A stretch of 64,000 nt of DNA from Entomortierella parvispora E1425 (lineage: Eukaryota; Fungi; Mortierellomycota): the NCBI GenBank assembly GCA_020891255.1, contig BQFW01000004.1, forward strand, positions 2,418,001 to 2,482,000, given 5' to 3'. Both the position numbers and the translations under genes were made by a program. This document shows positions 3,303 through 13,700 of this stretch, one piece after another. The first letter of the stretch is position 1. The number at the start of each line of letters is the position of its first letter. The notes beneath the pieces are model-generated. The model was not told the DNA's origin and searched no databases. It saw only the letters and a program-made list of their open reading frames with translations.

Positions 3303-3862
3303 AGGATTTGCGCCCTTGGAATCTCGACGGAGCATTCCTTTCGTCCTTGAAAGAATCGCCTGATTCCTTGCTTGCCTATCCCTTCGCTCACTGCAGACAA
3401 CAACTCGACAACAGCTGAAATACGACAAGGATTTTTTTTTTCTTGCCCTCCAGGATCCATTCGGCAGCCACTCGGCAAAAAACTTGAGGTATTAATATCC
3501 GACGACCTGAACTCGAAAATCCCAATAAACTCGAACACCCGACAACTTCGACAACCCAGCAACTCAACAGCTTCGACAGCCCAACAACTCGACAATCCAA
3601 CAAATTTGACGATATGATATTCTGATATTCTGACGTTACAGTACAAACAACAGCCAGACCCGCCGATGCTTGACACCACGATGATTTTGACCTTTCAACA
3701 ACCAACTAGTTTAGTCTCATATTTTATTGGAAATAAAAAAGAAACTCCGCTTTATTTTATTCTAACTCTCACAGATGAAGATAGGTGCAATAATTAAAGA
3801 GTCACGTGACATTTGTGTGACGGAAACATAGCTTGTCTGAAATGATAACAGATATCTGAACA

Positions 3863-3934
3863 TCCCCGATAGTATAGTGGTGAGTATCTCCGCCTGTCAC
3901 GCGGAAGACCCGGGTTCAATTCCCGGTCGAGGAG
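3863..3934 (+). tRNA. tRNA-Asp(GTC)
   Basis: 72-nt cloverleaf with anticodon arm TCCGC-CTGTCAC-GCGGA, T-arm CCGGG-TTCAATT-CCCGG, discriminator G73 and a T-run Pol III terminator just downstream. The acceptor stem has one C4:A69 mismatch. Confidence 0.96.
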
Positions 3935-4976
3935 CTTCTTTTTGTTTTTGCCCATATGATGCCATGGGCTCCAGCTGCTGTTTGCGGGGCTGGCTCCCTA
4001 TGTCGAATGGCCTCCACTGTATTCTTTTGAGGAATCCAGCCGACGACCATGTCGTTGGCTAGTTTTTCAACCTCCTTTTGGGTCTCTGTATCCGTCGACA
4101 TTGATATCCTCTACCTATCGACTTTTTTTCCGCCGCCTAATCCACCTCCCCAACACGTCCATGACCGTCGACCCACCCCGTCTCGGCGCTTCCCTCTTGG
4201 CCATTCTACTAATTGGCTACCTTGGCAGTGCAGGACTCGCAGAGCTGGCCGTAGACAGGACCAGGATAGTTCAGCTGGACGACAGACAACTCAGCGGCAC
4301 GGGCGCTGAAATCTGGCGCACAGTCAAGGTGTCGGCGTAGATTTGGTGAACACGAGATCATACCTATCAAGTGACCATTGTCGACCGTCTTCATAGTACC
4401 ATACATAGTCCTCCGTTTTTCACTTGTCGGTGGTCAAGCTTTTTCGCTGGATCAGTCTGTAGTTGATAGACGAAAAGGAAGATGGTTGTCAGCTTTTAAA
4501 GAAGAAAAAAAGGGAAGCAGAGGGCTGGCCGATCAGCCTGAAGGGCGACAGGAGGAACAGACGATTTACATAGGTACAGATTCATTACGACTTTGCTTTG
4601 GCTTCTTCCCTCCCTGAGAAAGGGAAACCAAAAAAAAAAAAAAAAAAAAAAGGCATGGCACGCGATGCCTGGCCTTTTTTACCCAGTTGAGACGGTGTTG
4701 GTAGTCGGGCTGTTATTCTTCGCGTTCATAGACCAGCAAACTCTCCAGTCTACGCAGCTGATCTGAAGCAAAGCGCTCAGTGTTTTCCATCTTTCCATCC
4801 TGACATATATGCAAGGCTACCTTGATCCTGAAGAGGCACAGGTCCGTCGCCATAGTGAACGCGTCGAGGCTCTCCAATAGACCGTCACCTACCCCTGCCT
4901 CTCAAATTCAGACACTTTTTTTTTCAACTGGCCGACATCCTTTCAACGAGCCAGTTCATTAGATCTTTTTGTCCAA

Positions 4977-7539
4977 ATGGCGGTGTCAACACGTCGCAAA
5001 AGTGGCGCTGCCGCTGAACAACGGGATATCGGCGTCCGACAACTTCGAAGTGGCACCCGCACCGTCAAAACGCCCACCACGCCCAAATCAAAACCCAAGC
5101 CCGATTCAGTCCATGAGAAAAGGATGGCTCTCACCAACTCTGCCCTCCAACAACAAGAACGCCCTCCATTAGCAACAGCGAGTACAAATGCAAAAGTTGG
5201 TCAGAAAAGGAAAGCGGATCCAGAACCGTCCAAGACCAATTCAGTGGCGACCCCCGAGATTCGTCAAGGCAAACGCAAACTGGATGGGTTCGATCCTGTT
5301 TTAGAGGTCGCTGATGGAGGCATGTCTGACAGTGAAGAATCAGAAAAGGGGATGACTGATGAAGAAATGTCGGAGGACGACGAAGGATCGGAAGAGGGGT
5401 CGAGTGATGTTAGCATGTCGGACAGCGAGTCTTCGGATGATGAATACTGGGAGCCTCGAAAGTTGGAAGTATTTGAAAGCTTTGAAAGGTTGGACCGTAA
5501 ACTCGAAGACTGGGCCTATGCCAATGGATTTGAATTGACCCAGAAGAAGTCCAGCCCTCAACGAGGTAAGCAGCACAATTATCTCCCAAGCCAAACATGT
5601 TCCCTGTGCAATTCTGACCCGTGGAAAAAAAACCCCACCCCTGACCGCTCTAGTGACTTTTGCATGCAAGGGGAAAGTAACCGAGCCACATCGAGTTGCA
5701 ACATCCAAGCGCATCGGCTGCCCTTGTCATGTTGTTGTCTGTGCCTTAAAATCCGTTTTTAAATCGAAGGAAGCTCCAAGTTGGTACCTCACCACCATCG
5801 ATACCAATCACAATCACGCCCTCAAGGTCAATGAGGCTGAGCTCGACCGACTCCAACGTGTGCTAACCCCCGCGGAGCGCGAGTTCATTTATAAAAACCG
5901 GGAAATTCACAGAACGACGACTCAAATGATCGACTTTCTGAGCTACGATTTTCGATTCGGACTATTCGACGAGCGAACAGTCTCTCTCGCCCTTCGAGCT
6001 GCAAAACAGGCTGCAATCACCTATGACTCTGAGGAGACAGAGCTCCTCAGGCTGCTCGAGGAGAAGGCGAGCAAGGAAAAGGACTGGTTTGTTTCAAAAG
6101 AGTTGGATTCGGAGGGTCACCTTCAAAGGCTTTTCTGGATGACGCCTGTTCAGAGAACTCTTTACCGCCATTGCCACGACGTGGTCCTTTACAACAACCC
6201 TTTCAAAGCCGACCCATTTGACATGACGTTCTACATTTTTTTCGGGGTCGATAACCAAGGAAAGAATCGTCTGATGGGCTGCTCCTTGGTCTCTGACAGC
6301 AAAACCGAAGACCACGCTTGGATCCTGCAACAATTGTTAAAGGCCAACAATGGCCAGCACCCGGGTGTCCTCATTGTCGATGAGGATCCCGCGGTCGAGG
6401 CCGCATGCACCGAAGTTATCCCGCGTACAAATCGACTGATCTCTCTTTGGCATCTTGTGAACCATCTCAAAGCGAACCTGCATGGAGCCCTGACCGTCGG
6501 CTGGACAGATTTCTTGCCCGTCTTTTGGAAGACACGAAATTCAATCACGCAGGATGTTTTTGAGCGTCGGTGGAAGGAGGATGTCTTGGTCCTGGTCCAT
6601 GACGAACCATCCTCCGCCAAGTCTTACCTGCAACGCATCTATGACCGCCGTGAGCGCTGGGCCTGGCCGTGGGTTGGAACGACCTTCACCATGGATATGC
6701 AGTCGTCTCTAAGAGTCAAGAATGTGAATGTCAAGATTACAAAGGCTGTGACCGGCAAGTCTTCTCTTCCCGAGCTGCACGAATCGATTCATCGCATTTT
6801 AAAGGATGAGAACAGTTCTTTCCAGTACGCAGAGGTCATGCGAATTCCTTATATTCCAACCAATCCAGGCTATATTAATTCGGGAAGGTTTCCTTGTGTC
6901 ATTATTGCGAATCAAATCCTTGGGGCTTTCGCATTGGAGCAAATGAGAACAGAGATGAACCAGAGTTTCGGCTACCAAGTTGTTCTGAGCGAGAATGAAG
7001 AACATGATGACGGAACTGAAGTGAAGGAAGAAAAGCAAGAGGTAAGTTCAATGCTGCTGTTTCGATCGTTGTCAGAATGAGAAAAAAAAGTGAAAGGAAC
7101 TAACCATGTAACCGTTATTGTCCTTGATTAGATCGAAAGACTCGTTTTGGACGACAGTCGGAAAGCATTGCTCAAATCCTTGACCAAAAACATTGATCCA
7201 GCCTTGATTGAACAGGTGTTCCGTGTCGCCAGCAAGCTCGAACTCCATGAACCGGTGTTAGTAGCCCTCCTCAAAGACGGTTCCTATCTTTGTACCTGTC
7301 TGCTTTTGCAAAAGAGCGGGATCGTTTGTCGCCATTTCTTCCAATTGATATCGGAGGACGATCGATTCAAATACCATTTAAGTCTCGTTCCGAAGCGCTG
7401 GCACGGAGGTCGTTTTCAAGACAACCCTGACTTCAATGTTTCCAAAACACCATTTGTAGACCGCTCTCACCGCGAGCAAGTCTTAGCGGATATACCGGCT
7501 GACACGTATATGAAGCACAAAGTGCGGGTTCTCCTGTGA
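4977..7539 (+). CDS. MULE (Mutator-like) transposase-derived FAR1-like protein, copy 1; introns at about 5567-5651 and 7043-7131
   Basis: Basic and acidic N-terminus, then a FAR1/WRKY-GCM1-type finger (FACK..SKRIGCP..W..NHNH), a MULE core (LFWMTP..DVVLYNN..GVDNQG..W..VLIVDED..LWHL..QSSLRVKNVN) and a C-terminal SWIM finger (CTC..GIVCRH). Confidence 0.88.
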
Positions 7540-7893
7540 ACTGAGGGTCCACCAACGCGAGATACTTTTCTGAATAAAAAACAATAAAAAAAAAAAAGAA
7601 GGCTGGCATGGTACGCGATGACTGACTCTCTTTCCTATAAAACACGCCTGGATTATTTTGGAAGTCTGACGTGTCTTCAAGGCTGCTTTGATCCCGAAGA
7701 GGCACAGGCCTGAGGACCAGCTATATAGTGGACGCGTCAAGGATCTCAGCTTCTGTCTCTCAATAGATTCTGTCTCAGAATTGGCCGTCACCGACACATC
7801 AAATTCTGCAAAACCTGAATGCTTCGGCCAACATCGTTTTCAACTACCCTCATTACCTCATTAGATACTGCTCAAGATCTTTTTTCTGTCCAA

Positions 7894-9773
7894 ATGGCGG
7901 TGTCAACACGTCGCAAAAGAGGCGCTGCCGCTGAACAACGGAATATCGGCGTCCGACAACTTCGAAGTGGCACCCGCACCGTCAAAACGCCCACCACGCC
8001 CAAAACAAAACCCAAACCCAATTCAGTCCATGAGAAAAAGACGGCTCGCACCAACTCTGCCCTCCATCCAAACGAACGCCCTCCATTAGCAACAGCCAAT
8101 ACAAATGCAAGAGTTGGTCAGAAAAGAAAAGCGGATCCAGAACCGTCCATATCCGATTTAGTGGCGACCCCCGAGATTCGTCAAGGCAAACGCAAACTGG
8201 ATGTGTTTGATCCTGTATTAGAGGTCGCTGATGGAGACATGTCTGACAGTGAAGAATCAGAAAAGGAGATGACTGAAGAAGAAATGTCGAATGACGAAGA
8301 ATCGGAAGAGGGGTCGAGCGATGTAAGCATGCTGGACGGCGAGTCTTTGCATGATGAATACTGGGAGCCACAAAAGGAGGAATTCTTTGAAAGCTTTGAA
8401 AAGTTGGCTCGCAAGCTCAACAACTGGGCCTTTGCTGGAGGGTTTGAATTGACCCAGAAGAAGTCCAGCCCTCAACGAGGTAAGCAGCACAATTATCCCC
8501 CCCACCCCCCCACCCCCCTCCAACCGAAAGCCTCGTTCCTTCTGACCAGCGGACAAATCCATCCCTGGCCGCTCTAGTGACTTTTGCATGCAAGGGGAAA
8601 GAAACCGAGCCACATCGAGTTGCAACATCCAAGCGCATCGGCTGCCCCTGTCGTGTCGTTGTCCGTGCTTCAAACCCCATTCCAAAACCCAGTTCAAAGT
8701 CAAAGGAGACTCCTAGCTGGTACCCCACCACCATCGATACCAATCACAATCACATCCTCAAGGTCAGCGAGGCTGAGCTCGACCGACTCCAACATGTGCT
8801 GACCCCGGCGGAACGCACCGTTATTTATAAATACCAGCACATTATCGACACGACAACTCTAATGATCAACTTTCTAAACTACGATTGGCCATCCAGAATA
8901 TACGACGAGCGAACAATCTCTCTCGCCCTTCGAGCTGCAAAACAGGCTGCAATCACCTATGACTCTGAGGAGACAGAGCTCCTCAGGCTGCTCGAGGAGA
9001 AGACGAACAAGGAAAAGGACTGGTTTGTTTCAAAAGAGTTGGATTCAGAGGGTCATCTTCAAAGGCTTTTCTGGATGACGCCTGTTCAGAGAACTCTTTA
9101 CCGCCGTTACCGCGATGTGGTCCTTTACAACAACCCTTTCAAAGACGACCGATTCGACATGACGTTCTACATATTTTTTCTGGTCGATAACGAAGGCAAG
9201 AGTCGCCTGGTGGGCTGCTCCTTGGTCTCTGACAGCAAAACCGAAGACCACGCTTGGATCCTGCAACAATTGTTAAAGGCCAACAATGGCCAGCACCCGG
9301 GTGTCCTCATTGTCGATGAGGATCCCGCGGTCGAGGCCGCATGCACCGAAGTTATCCCGCGTACAAATCGACTGATCTCTCTTTGGCATCTTGTGAACCA
9401 TCTCAAAGCGAACCTGCATGGAGCCCTGACCGTCGGCTGGACAGATTTCTTGCCCGTCTTTTGGAAGACACGAAATTCAATCACGCAGGATGTTTTTGAG
9501 CGTCGGTGGAAGGAGGATGTCTTGGTCCTGGTCCATGACGAACCATCCTCCGCCAAATCTTACCTGCAACGCATCTATGACCGCCGTGAGCGCTGGGCCT
9601 GGCCGTGGGTTGGAACGACCTTCACCATGGATATGCAGTCGACTGAAAGAGTCAAGTGTGTGAATGTCAAGATCACAAAGGCGGTGCATGGTCAGTCTTG
9701 TCTTCCCGAGCTGTTCAAGTCGATTGATCGCATCTTAAAGGAGGAGAACGAGCACGTAGAGTATAAGGGATAA
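7894..9773 (+). CDS. MULE transposase-derived FAR1-like protein, copy 2; C-terminally truncated, no SWIM finger, possibly a pseudogene; intron at about 8480-8575
   Basis: Near-identical paralog of 4977-7539. It stops at TAA TAG (9771-9776). Homologous sequence continues out of frame to about 9985, and no SWIM exon follows. Confidence 0.8.
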
Positions 9774-10204
9774 TAGGGCATACCTCACCCGATCGAGGCC
9801 ATATTTTATTTGTTATTTCTGAAAGGTTTTCTCGTGTCATTACTGCGAATAAAATCCTCGGGGCTTTCGCACTGGAGCAATTGAAAACAGAGATGATCCA
9901 GAGACTTAGATACCGAGTTCTTCCGAGAGAGAAGGAATATGGAGAAGATGGCAGAACCGAAGTGGAGGAGGAAACGAACGAGGGTTGAGTGCTGCCTTTT
10001 CAAAAAAAAATGCATGCGTCGTTCTCGTTCTCCAGGTCTTGTCACAAACGCCTTCTTTAGATGCGAGCGTCCTGATCTAGTAACACCTGGAGTCAGGAAA
10101 CAAAAGTACTCTTTCTTCCCCTGTCCCCAAACATGAGGCGAGGCACAGTTCAGCCAAAAGTGAGGTCCCAGGAGGCCCCAGGACTCAAAAATAGCAAAAA
10201 GAAG

Positions 10205-10276
10205 CTCCTCGACCGGGAATTGAACCCGGGTCTTCCGCGTGACAGGCGGAGATACTCACCACTATACTATCGGGGA
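10205..10276 (-). tRNA. tRNA-Asp(GTC), identical to 3863-3934, inverted
   Basis: Its reverse complement matches the 3863-3934 gene at all 72 nt, and both share the trailer CTTCTTTTTG. Confidence 0.96.
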
Positions 10277-10756
10277 TCAGCTTGTTGAATGCCGTGGATT
10301 CTGAGATTCTCTGGTTCATGCTCCGACAAATTTGGTGGCGTAATAACAGTCACGAGATCATGGCATGCCCCTTAATTTGGACGTCAATGCCTCAGTCCTG
10401 CCCCGTGCGCGCAAGCTTACGAGGTTCAAAGACCTTTGGTTGGTAGGCGCGAAAACCAAGTACACGAAAGATCTAATAGTCCGAAGGAGGGCATGAAGAG
10501 AGGACACAGGGTTGTAGTGAGACGTGGCAAAAGAAATGAAAGGAAAAAAAAAGAAAAAAATCACACACAAAAAAAAAAGGAAGAGCGGCAACCTTGACGA
10601 GATAACAGACCAGAGATCCTGCAATACGCCAATTCAAGGGGTTCTCTTCATTCTTTTCATTCTTTTATTGCTTTAAATACACCGGAGGAAAAAAGAAGTC
10701 AAGTTTTTTTTTTTTTTTTGGTTGATCAGATATCTATGGTTTGTTTTTTTTCCTGT

Positions 10757-13700
10757 CTATCGTCGTTGCTGCAAAAGATCTTGAGCATAGACCCGCGCAT
10801 CGCTCACAAAATCGTACAGTCCTTCTCGACATCCGCTTTCTTCCGCAAGACGCTGTAGACCCACCCAGAGCTGCTCCTTGACAGCGTCTGGGAAGACCAG
10901 TCCAGCATACATGGCCGGACTATCGATACCATTGGAGAAGGACCCTGGAGAGGATCCTCCATGACCACCATTGGATCCGAGATCCGTGGCCGAAAGCACC
11001 TGTGCGACCTGTAGCTCTGCCACAATCCTCTTCAAATCTCCATGCCAAACGCTCAAGAACGATCCTGCTGCTGGTTCTCCTTGTGATCCCAAAAATCCAT
11101 TCGCAGGATCTCCTTGGTCCAGTCCAGAAAGTCGTCTGGAGGACAAGGACGAGATCGACCCGGACGAGTCCTTGACCATCAAATGGATCAAATCCGCCAT
11201 CTCTTCTAGTAACAGATCCTGTCCATGACTCAGCGCCAGTCGGAACAAAATTTGTAAAAACTCGAACCGGAACCGTGTCTGGAAATCCTCTCGATCAAAC
11301 AGTCGGCAGAGGTGCGATTGATGCATCTCTCGTAAAATCTCGATCGATTGACGGACAACATCTGGTTCGGGTCGATGTAGTCCTTGGGCCAAAGTTTCTA
11401 AACAACCTTGGAGTGCTTCCTGACTGCACGGGTCCATAGCTGCCACCGCGGTTGTTGCTCCTGATCCTGATATTGACACTCCTGCTTTGGAGTTTAGGGT
11501 GTGAGAAAAGAAGTATCGGCTATGGTTCAGGACCATGGTCTTGATTGTTGACAGATATAAATTCATCAGCTCCAAGACTCCATTGTCGGAATCATCCTTG
11601 GAGCGCTCCTGAGGCAGCGGCGAGGATGACAAGGACGTCAAAGGCGACCCCATTTTCGTTCCGGTGCCCATCAACTTTGGACCGAGTTGAAGAAACAAGA
11701 ACCGTGCGAATTCGGGTAGAGCGCCTGTCACCTCCTTCTTTGAGATTTCCAAAACAGCTCTGATAATCTCAACTGACGCCTTGGTCCGGTCCAGAATCAT
11801 CTTTTGGTGTTCTGCAAATGACCTTTGTTGGCGTTGTGGGTCCAAGGGTGCTGTCATCAGGGCTGTGTCCAGCAATGATGGACTAGACGTCGTGAGCTGA
11901 TCCATCAGGAATCGAGCGATCGACAGACCGCGTGTCGCGCTAGTGAGGCGATTAAGGCTCTTGATCTCTACCTTGTAGAATCGCAAGATGTCCATATAGA
12001 TATCTATGGAACATATAACGAGAGTATCAGGTCAGTAGGGACATTTTAGGAAATTTTGGTGAAAAAGCCTCAAAGAGAAGTTGCCATGGTTTTTACCCTG
12101 GTCATCCCGATAAATCTTTAGGTATTGTTCAGCGTAGTGGATCATGAATTTCGAAGCTTCAAACACCATTCCTCTAGGCGTATCCGATGCTTCACTAACA
12201 GAAGCCACCACGGCTCTAAAGATGACCAAGGACCGATGGAAAGTGGATCGCAACTCTGGATTCGACCAATAAGTTGGTTGATTTGCACGAGGGTCTTCCA
12301 ACAGATCCTGAAAAGGCTGCGCTATTGGTGCAAGAAAGCGGGCAAGTGCCTAAATCAAAGCATGCAAAAAAAAAAAAAAAAAAAAAAAAACATTAGAATT
12401 ACACGGGAATAGATCATACAGTCATTTCCAGCCTAGCCGACCATGATGCCATACCGGAATAGAGACTGGGACGTGGAGATTGTCGTCCACTCCAAGAACC
12501 AGTCCATACGTGACTGCAGTGAACGCCAGCTGAAATAGTTCATCAGTAGGCGTTACACCTTCTCGATCCAGCGACTCATCCTCTTCTTGTCCACCGTTCA
12601 AAATCGATACAGGGAACTCTGTCCCCATGAAGTCCCCATTCAGCATCACGTTCTGATGAAGACACGAGACGAATCCTTGAATCGGCTCCAAGTCCCAAAA
12701 CGCAATCTTGTCACCCTCATTCATTGTCGGCATTCGAACTTGGAGCGTCAACCATCGAAGTGAGGTCATAGATGCGTGTAGGAGCTTTCGATCCATGGGG
12801 GAACAAGACGTTGAAACAGGTCCCAAAAACGTGTTCATAAGCGCCGGCGCTCCTGCCGGGATGGCAGGTGCTTGTTGCAATAGAGGTACAGCGGAAGAGG
12901 ATGGGAGCAGCGATTTGAAGAGACTGCACAAAATCTGAATAAGTTCCCGGTATATGTCCTGAGCGATGGGGCCAGGACTGGTATGTACATTTGAGTTTGT
13001 CTCGGCCTGTCGAAGTTGTTCCAGCCACGGAATTAGAGGCATTAGGGAATGCAACAACGCCAGCGTTCTAAATGATTCATGGTTCCATTGACTTGTTAGA
13101 GCCACAAAGAGTCAAGTGCAATAAAAACAGGCGGATATCTCAAAAAAAAAAAAAAAAAAAAGCCCGCTTACATTGATCCCGTTAGTTCAGCCTCATCTTT
13201 TCCTGGACTGCTTGCTCCTCCGACTGCACCATAGTACTCAATAGATATCCTTGTCATCCGTGTTAGGCTCACAAAGAGGTTGGATGTGTATTGGCGCGTT
13301 CGGTCAAAGTTTTGCTGAAAGTTGTATGCAATTCGTGTCAATATCCCCAGCGTCACAGGCAGCTATTGAGATGTATTATAGAGCTGTCAGTTTCAAAGTC
13401 GGCTGCAAGAAGATCACCGCAAGACTGGACCTTGAAGTTTCAGTACTTACCGTTTTACACTCGCCAATATCTCGCCTCGAATATGTGTCAAGTTGTTGAT
13501 GAAGTAACGGGTTCTAAAAAATAGATTCAACACATGGATACGTCGTTAGATCTTTGGACCAGCGTAATAGGTCCAGGTTTGTTACGAAGGGAGCCTGTTC
13601 TTACCAGCATTTCGATGACCTCGTCTATAAAGACTTCGCCTATAAGTCCTGCAAAGCTCTCGACCAATTCAGTTAAAACCTCCAAGTCTTCCTCGTCCTC

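Follow-up and report, generated by a model that had tools for sequence, protein, structure and literature searches.

Transposases that are truncated or catalytically dead are known to act as repressors, as with the KP protein of the P element and dominant-negative derivatives of mariner or Ac. Among the Mutator-like elements (MULEs), alanine substitutions of the DDE residues of the Muta1 transposase abolish cleavage and joining while DNA binding persists, and the catalytic core has a defined geometry in which the second Asp is followed, 15 to 45 aa later, by a (C/D)xxH motif and the Glu is preceded by a Trp (PMC5499845). The FHY3/FAR1/FRS and MUSTANG proteins of plants form orthologous clades across angiosperms, evolve under purifying selection, and have demonstrated functions (PMC4948706). 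A literature search turned up no direct precedent for domestication of a MULE in fungi or in Mortierella. The window analyzed here, a 64,000-nt stretch of the genome of Entomortierella parvispora (Mortierellomycota), contains two tandem units, located between positions 4630 and ~9985, each carrying a gene for a MULE-type transposase. Judged from its sequence, this locus is an immobilized, catalytically dead MULE transposase gene that has been duplicated in tandem. It is not an established transcription-factor family or a proven regulator; the reading that we prefer, with a probability of roughly 0.5, is that the pair represents a young, species-restricted candidate for exaptation whose protein may bind DNA without cutting it.

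Both copies matched the Pfam MULE profile (PF10551) with scores of 54 to 55 bits (E value of ~1e-14; cutoff, 27.6 bits), while intact relatives scored 76 to 82 bits. Alignment placed an Asn in the column of the first catalytic Asp (AAC at 6193-6195 in copy 1 and 9129-9131 in copy 2), a Ser in that of the CxxH Cys (TCT at 6442-6444, resulting in an SxxH motif at +21 after the second Asp), and a Lys in that of the catalytic Glu (AAG at 6718-6720 in copy 1 and 9654-9656 in copy 2). The second Asp was retained (GAT, 6379-6381), as were the His of the CxxH motif (6451-6453) and the Trp located 18 residues upstream of the Glu column (6664-6666). A preliminary description of this DNA had reported these three substitutions, with only the second Asp left, and the codons were as it had given them. 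Its placement of the triad was borne out by alignment to intact MULEs, in line with the check that it had proposed: where the window copies have N, D, S..H, and K, all four of the other E. parvispora MULE families that were aligned have D, D, C..H, and E, and D-D-C-H-E was present in 117 of 151 relatives, most of the others being fragments or having single deviations. These relatives were drawn from two sources, the 150 top representatives of a full HMMER search (1.84 billion proteins) and the matches from a word search, and N-D-S-H-K was found among them solely in the two window proteins. As the Asp, Cys, and Glu have all been substituted and the DDE residues are essential in Muta1 (PMC5499845), the alignment showed that the window protein is unable to cut or join DNA and, hence, is not an active transposase.

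The same genome contains a MULE family of 8 near-identical copies of ~9.6 kb with ~50-bp terminal inverted repeats (TIRs), 9-bp target site duplications (TSDs), and an intact D-D-C-H-E motif (L003-L010 and L024-L028), features indicating that this family was recently active. The structure of the window genes, all on the (+) strand, was compared with that of this family. Copy 1 at 4961-7033 pairs with copy 2 at 7875-9974 with 87% nucleotide identity, and a weaker upstream homology (74 to 78% identity) links 4630-4874 to 7579-7747. The upstream homology places the duplication junction at ~7575-7579, and from the two homologies tandem unit 1, consisting of an upstream region and copy 1, extends from 4630 to 7575. 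Exon 1 of copy 1 (4977-5565), whose open reading frame and splice donor were read directly, encodes residues 1 to 196 of the annotated protein P0001, comprising a basic and acidic N terminus and the first half of a WRKY/FAR1-type finger domain. Exon 2 (5654-7041) encodes the second half of this finger and the MULE RNase H-like core (Pfam MULE E value of 1.1e-14) with the six key codons located above, and exon 3 (7132-7539) encodes a SWIM finger. The introns are of the GT..AG type, and the resulting model is identical to the annotated 794-aa protein. Exon 3 is, however, shortened relative to the active family: only residues 1 to 140 of the 245-aa exon 3 of L003 aligned with it by tblastn, such that the C-terminal ~105 aa, with a basic tract and a CCHC knuckle, are gone from copy 1 and the cut is located just before the duplication junction.

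Copy 2 has an exon 1 at 7894-8478, with 82% amino acid identity to exon 1 of copy 1 (the annotation begins at an upstream ATG, 7819), and an exon 2 at 8578-9773 that ends at a premature TAA; this model corresponds to the annotated 618-aa protein P0002. Compared with copy 1, this copy has a 7-nt deletion at 9770, followed by TAA TAG at 9771-9776 and by later indels. The last ~69 codons of exon 2 persist as an out-of-frame dead tail (9774-9985), at the end of which homology to copy 1 stops, and no relic of exon 3 or of the SWIM finger was found 3′ of copy 2. The earlier statement that the frames are open consequently applied in full to copy 1 but not to copy 2, with its 7-nt deletion, early stop, and missing SWIM exon. 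The introns are canonical, as had been claimed, but lose their value as evidence for a host gene: both occur at the same positions and in the same phases in the active MULE family, indicating that they are transposon derived and no sign of a host gene.

Neither TIRs nor TSDs of the 8 to 10 bp expected for a mobile MULE were found at the locus, in keeping with the earlier remark that no TIRs were evident. Local alignments for TIR remnants between the tRNA genes that flank the pair and the gene copies gave scores no better than those of shuffled sequences, and the TIR motif of the active family had no match in the window with up to 3 mismatches allowed. The lineage consists of two tandem copies only in this genome at both the DNA and exon 1 levels, exon 1 matching only copy 2, and the low copy number, which the preliminary description had named as a point to check, was thereby confirmed. 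These searches showed that the locus is immobile and cannot move. Several of the features by which exapted transposases are recognized (PMC4948706) were present, namely the lack of TIRs, the small number of copies, and, in copy 1, an uninterrupted frame. The criteria that carry the greatest weight are orthologues, clear purifying selection, and expression; the protein searches described below gave no orthologue, and the estimates of selection were mixed.

The flanking tRNA genes, detected with both ARAGORN and Rfam, are a tRNA-Asp(GTC) gene at 3863-3935 (+), with unit 1 starting 690 bp away, and a second tRNA-Asp(GTC) gene at 10204-10276 (−), whose 3′ end is 219 bp from copy 2. The two genes are identical and convergent and enclose the whole MULE-derived locus. 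The pair is located 3′ of both, as is the case for copies of the active family, and hence looks like an old tRNA-targeting MULE insertion whose ends have since been lost. Two candidates for element ends were rejected. The region has a single long inverted repeat (88 nt, 98% identity, 3862-3949 and 10190-10277), which is not a TIR, as it is composed of tRNA-Asp and a 14-nt trailer that occur in near-identical form 10 times in the genome. An inverted repeat of an A run and a T run (4626-4645 and 10704-10723) was of low complexity and had no extension.

In a quick maximum-likelihood (ML) tree, a fully supported node joined the pair to the intact transposases P0003 and P0006, and P0007 and the 8-copy active family of E. 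parvispora were next to this group. The stem branch of the pair was 0.92, compared to 0.14 to 0.31 for the intact sisters, and the frame was still open after this branch. Comparison of the two copies detected a recent gene conversion tract at 6275-6705 (+), in which 431 nt contained one mismatch to copy 2 (9211-9641) against a background divergence of ~15%. The longest identical run extended from 6275 to 6620, with the next mismatches at 6621 and 6706, and exon 2 codons 226 to 300 had zero synonymous or nonsynonymous differences between the copies. The Asn and the Lys are common to both copies and lie outside this tract, so the simplest reading of the alignment is that catalytic inactivation took place before the duplication, a sequence of events that had already been proposed and that the position of these two codons upheld; the Ser lies inside the tract and is uninformative on timing.

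These data are consistent with a scenario in which a Mutator-like element would have inserted downstream of a tRNA-Asp gene, the locus being its immobilized remnant. The three-exon transposase gene would have lost the first Asp, the CxxH Cys, the Glu, and ~105 residues at its C terminus, the CCHC knuckle among them, and the element would have lost its two ends. A segment of ~2.95 kb would then have been duplicated in tandem, after which copy 2 probably lost its 3′ end; the copies may still exchange sequence through gene conversion. If the protein is functional, it would most likely bind DNA without cleavage through the WRKY/FAR1-type finger, and binding could be aided by basic motifs resembling nuclear localization signals and by an acidic Ser/Asp/Glu tract in the novel N terminus.

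Whether a protein has been kept at this locus was assessed from the differences between the copies. Among 167 substitutions in 588 aligned codons, there were no nonsense changes, although 6.8 to 6.9 were expected from the empirical substitution spectrum. The probability of obtaining no stops was ~9e-4, and that of obtaining one or none was ~8e-3 if the terminal lesion of copy 2 is counted as one event. Both of the exon indels upstream of the copy 2 stop (3 and 12 nt) were in frame. The exons were 89 to 90% identical, compared to 60% for intron 1, and the upstream DNA could be aligned in patches only. An excess of change of ~15% at conserved sites predates the duplication and had accumulated without a break in the frame. 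From these patterns we infer that the reading frames have been guarded from nonsense and frameshift changes while the amino acid sequence drifted almost freely. It is this combination, a protected frame and a drifting sequence, that leads to the reading of the pair as a young, species-restricted exaptation candidate.

The principal alternative is that the locus is a plain relic, in which a dead MULE gene and its duplicate decay neutrally and have no host function, the open frames being due to youth, gene conversion, or a bias in what was noticed. We regard this alternative as a serious one, though less probable than the preferred reading. The missing nonsense changes (P of ~1e-3), the in-frame indels, the far greater divergence of the intron and upstream DNA than of the exons, and the excess change at conserved sites that preceded duplication without breaking the frame are all contrary to expectations for such a relic. 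A substantial body of observations, collected in the remainder of this paragraph and in the next two, favors the relic or weighs against our preferred reading. Gene conversion rather than selection could account for some of the excess identity seen in the exons. The dN/dS ratio obtained with the NG86 method was 0.79 for exon 1, 0.57 for exon 2, and 0.64 for the pooled exons (Fisher P = 0.011), values that were counted against retention. The ML (GY94) estimate of omega was 1.0 for exon 1, 0.72 for exon 2, and 0.80 for the pooled exons, the last being not different from 1 (P = 0.24); omega for the core alone was 0.54 (P = 0.048), a value that favors our preferred reading. Thus, a ratio below 1, which the preliminary description had named as a check, was obtained with NG86 and for the core by ML, but the pooled ML estimate could not be distinguished from 1. 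Its claim that the protein had been kept fared in the same manner, being favored by the count of nonsense changes and not by the pooled omega. The differences between the copies were also nearly even across the three codon positions (47, 55, and 65).

Conserved residues have been lost about three times faster in the pair than in its relatives at every part of the protein. The window copies differed at 26 to 35% of the columns that are otherwise invariant among intact relatives, compared to 11 to 19% for the intact relatives themselves. In Tajima relative-rate tests, unique changes in the copies exceeded those in the intact sister P0003 by factors of 2 to 4 (P values of 1e-3 to 1e-9), and the ratio was the same throughout, with counts of 7:3 for the finger, 14:5 for the linker, and 45:14 for the core. 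The idea that the DNA-binding finger has been conserved differentially was, therefore, rejected, since its rate of change matched that of the core. A second idea, that copy 1 is conserved while copy 2 decays, was also rejected. Derived changes were more frequent in the longer copy 1 than in copy 2 (14 versus 8, and 16 versus 8 in a second count; P = 0.1), the reverse of this expectation if anything. Also in keeping with a relic are the lesions, namely the C-terminal truncation of copy 1 and, in copy 2, an early stop, a frameshift, and a missing SWIM exon. The tRNA-adjacent position is typical of insertions by such elements, and the genome contains other broken MULE relics (e.g., L016, with 4 stops). 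The gene models of E. parvispora are AUGUSTUS predictions, and published RNA-seq data for this species are available as DRA013164 (PMC8759367).

Profile scores for the fingers were also low. The four ligands of the C2H2 finger are present in both copies (in copy 1, Cys 5665-5667, Cys 5719-5721, His 5809-5811, and His 5815-5817), and copy 1 has a SWIM pattern, CxC..CxH, at 7291-7335. The Pfam FAR1 profile (PF03101) gave 14.8 bits against a cutoff of 28.1, with no match at an E value of ≤0.01 for full-length P0001 or P0002, and intact relatives outscored the window proteins on this profile; the SWIM profile (PF04434) gave 14.3 bits against a cutoff of 19.6. As these scores are under threshold, the earlier description of the C2H2 finger as intact in both copies, and of the SWIM finger as intact in copy 1, holds for retention of the ligands and of the CxC..CxH pattern but not at the level of the profiles. 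A search for orthologues also counted toward the relic. When 5.8 billion proteins were scanned by word search, the sole matches were the two window proteins and three intact MULE transposases, of which the nearest was 50% identical and had an intact triad; there was no orthologue and no other relative with N-D-S-H-K. The full HMMER search yielded 3,725 relatives, and among the best 150 of these there was none with the substituted triad, while the N-terminal ~165 residues were covered only by copy 2. P0003 and P0006, to which the pair is most closely related, are both intact transposases. The protein searches thus provided no sign of a family beyond this locus, with the sampling of close relatives in the databases being uncertain. 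The proposal that the pair is a host gene belonging to a lineage-specific transcription factor family was not supported on these grounds, as no orthologue was found, dN/dS is 0.64 to 0.80, and the finger changes as fast as the core.

A further alternative is that the pair acts as a transposon antagonist, with the nuclease-dead protein competing with or poisoning the active tRNA-targeting MULE transposases through occupancy of element ends or formation of mixed oligomers. An arms race of this type would explain the fast evolution. Several observations fit such a role: the active 8-copy family with its intact triad coexists with the pair and is its closest relative within the genome, the protected frame combined with a high omega is the pattern expected under conflict, the protein has kept its finger ligands and the conserved Trp, and Muta1 DDE mutants still bind DNA (PMC5499845). 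We nevertheless consider it unlikely. The core shares only 42% identity with that of the active family, and divergence in the finger is of similar extent, making a shared DNA specificity or oligomerization doubtful; in addition, no match to the TIR motif of the active family is present in the window. A related and likewise improbable suggestion is that the pair is a very young, species-restricted exaptation in progress. In this view, a nuclease-dead transposase derived from a tRNA-targeting MULE would be retained as a rapidly evolving protein that binds DNA and antagonizes or regulates either the active tRNA-targeting MULEs of this genome or Pol III-proximal chromatin. If true, this would explain how a protected frame can coexist with a nearly free sequence. 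The notion that the locus still encodes a transposase or can be mobilized, with catalysis by other acidic residues or movement of the unit in trans, draws on the remaining second Asp, CxxH His, and Trp and on the significant MULE scores but is already contradicted by the data presented here, being very improbable given that 117 of 151 relatives have the conserved D, C, and E in the three columns substituted here, that there are no TIRs, TSDs, or dispersed copies, and that the duplication is in tandem with its junction within the 3′ region of the gene.

The position of the pair led to a separate observation on the active MULE family. All 8 copies of this family are located 24 to 69 bp downstream of a tRNA gene, at distances of 35 (Tyr), 62 (Ile), 24 (Ile), 43 (Glu), 69 (Val), 37 (Pro), 58 (Glu), and 48 (Cys) bp, and the tRNA may be next to either end of the element. 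Given a total of 192 tRNA genes in 38.7 Mb, adjacency in 8 of 8 cases is far beyond chance. Divergent tRNA pairs situated 150 to 170 bp apart were also observed beside active MULE copies (L026 and L037). The interior of the element contains a tandem array of eight 279-bp repeats, and the ends were mapped in L024-L039 (left end, L027:6296; right end, L024:6709). A review (PMC5911963) lists insertion 3′ of tRNA genes as a preference of Dictyostelium retrotransposons only, and no report of a tRNA-targeting DNA transposon turned up in a literature search. The genome contains at least three further MULE families (L012; L013/L016/L020; and L014/L015/L018/L019), which are 27 to 32% identical to the window protein. 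Their aligned representatives have intact triads, and some of the loci are multicopy while others are broken, including L016.

Within the window, two adjacent segments of ~80 nt (4219-4382) are located between the first tRNA-Asp gene and copy 1 and match separate sites of one other contig. The first (4219-4306) is 91% identical to G000:C12:1706027-1706114 (+), and the second (4307-4382) is 94% identical to C12:2111328-2111404 (−). The two matching sites are otherwise dissimilar, and there was no tRNA or clear gene at either. Filler DNA is one possible explanation for these segments; small dispersed repeats left behind by the old element are another. The nearest nontransposon gene downstream of the pair is a 412-aa open frame at 10757-11995 (−).

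Dead transposase genes and domesticated MULEs are both well known, and the pair by itself adds little to either. Its value comes from the combination of an intact sister lineage, an active relative in the same genome, and a tandem duplicate that can be dated; if orthologues or transcripts were to appear, the pair could capture the earliest stages in the conversion of a transposon into a host gene. It is also of value for its position, which drew attention to the insertion of the active MULE family beside tRNA genes. The closest described systems are the active MULEs, i.e., the 8-copy family of this genome and Muta1, MuDR, Hop, and Mutyl, in which a WRKY/FAR1-type finger, a MULE core, and a SWIM finger occur in the same order as in the pair. 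With the 8-copy family, the pair shares intron positions and phases, a location 3′ of tRNA genes, and a core that is 42% identical. In contrast to active MULEs, the pair has N-D-S-H-K in place of D-D-C-H-E, has no TIRs or TSDs, has lost the basic tract and CCHC knuckle, has a novel N terminus of ~150 aa, and is present as tandem rather than dispersed copies.

Among host proteins, FHY3/FAR1/FRS and MUSTANG (PMC4948706) resemble the pair in being derived from MULEs, in being immobile and devoid of TIRs, and in having open frames and the finger-core-SWIM layout, but for the pair no orthologue was found, omega is 0.6 to 0.8, and the finger has not been spared. The NCBI record names the protein after animal ZSWIM1/ZSWIM3. 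The similarity to the corresponding RNase H-like profile (PF21056, ZSWIM1-3) is weak, with 20.4 bits for P0001 against a cutoff of 27.2 bits and 32.4 bits for P0002, and copy 1 has a SWIM finger; the name reflects shared MULE ancestry, not orthology. The finger belongs to the same MULE-derived fold class as those of the fungal WRKY-GCM1/AFT-type proteins, such as Aft1 and Aft2, but the AFT proteins have no transposase core, and the window proteins gave no match to PF08731, for which the intact sister P0003 gave a weak match. The repressors derived from P elements, mariner, and Ac belong to different superfamilies, and the pair, unlike them, does not reside in a mobile copy. What the pair has in common with these repressors, with repression itself being an analogy, is a nuclease-dead protein that keeps the DNA-binding part of a transposase in the vicinity of active relatives.

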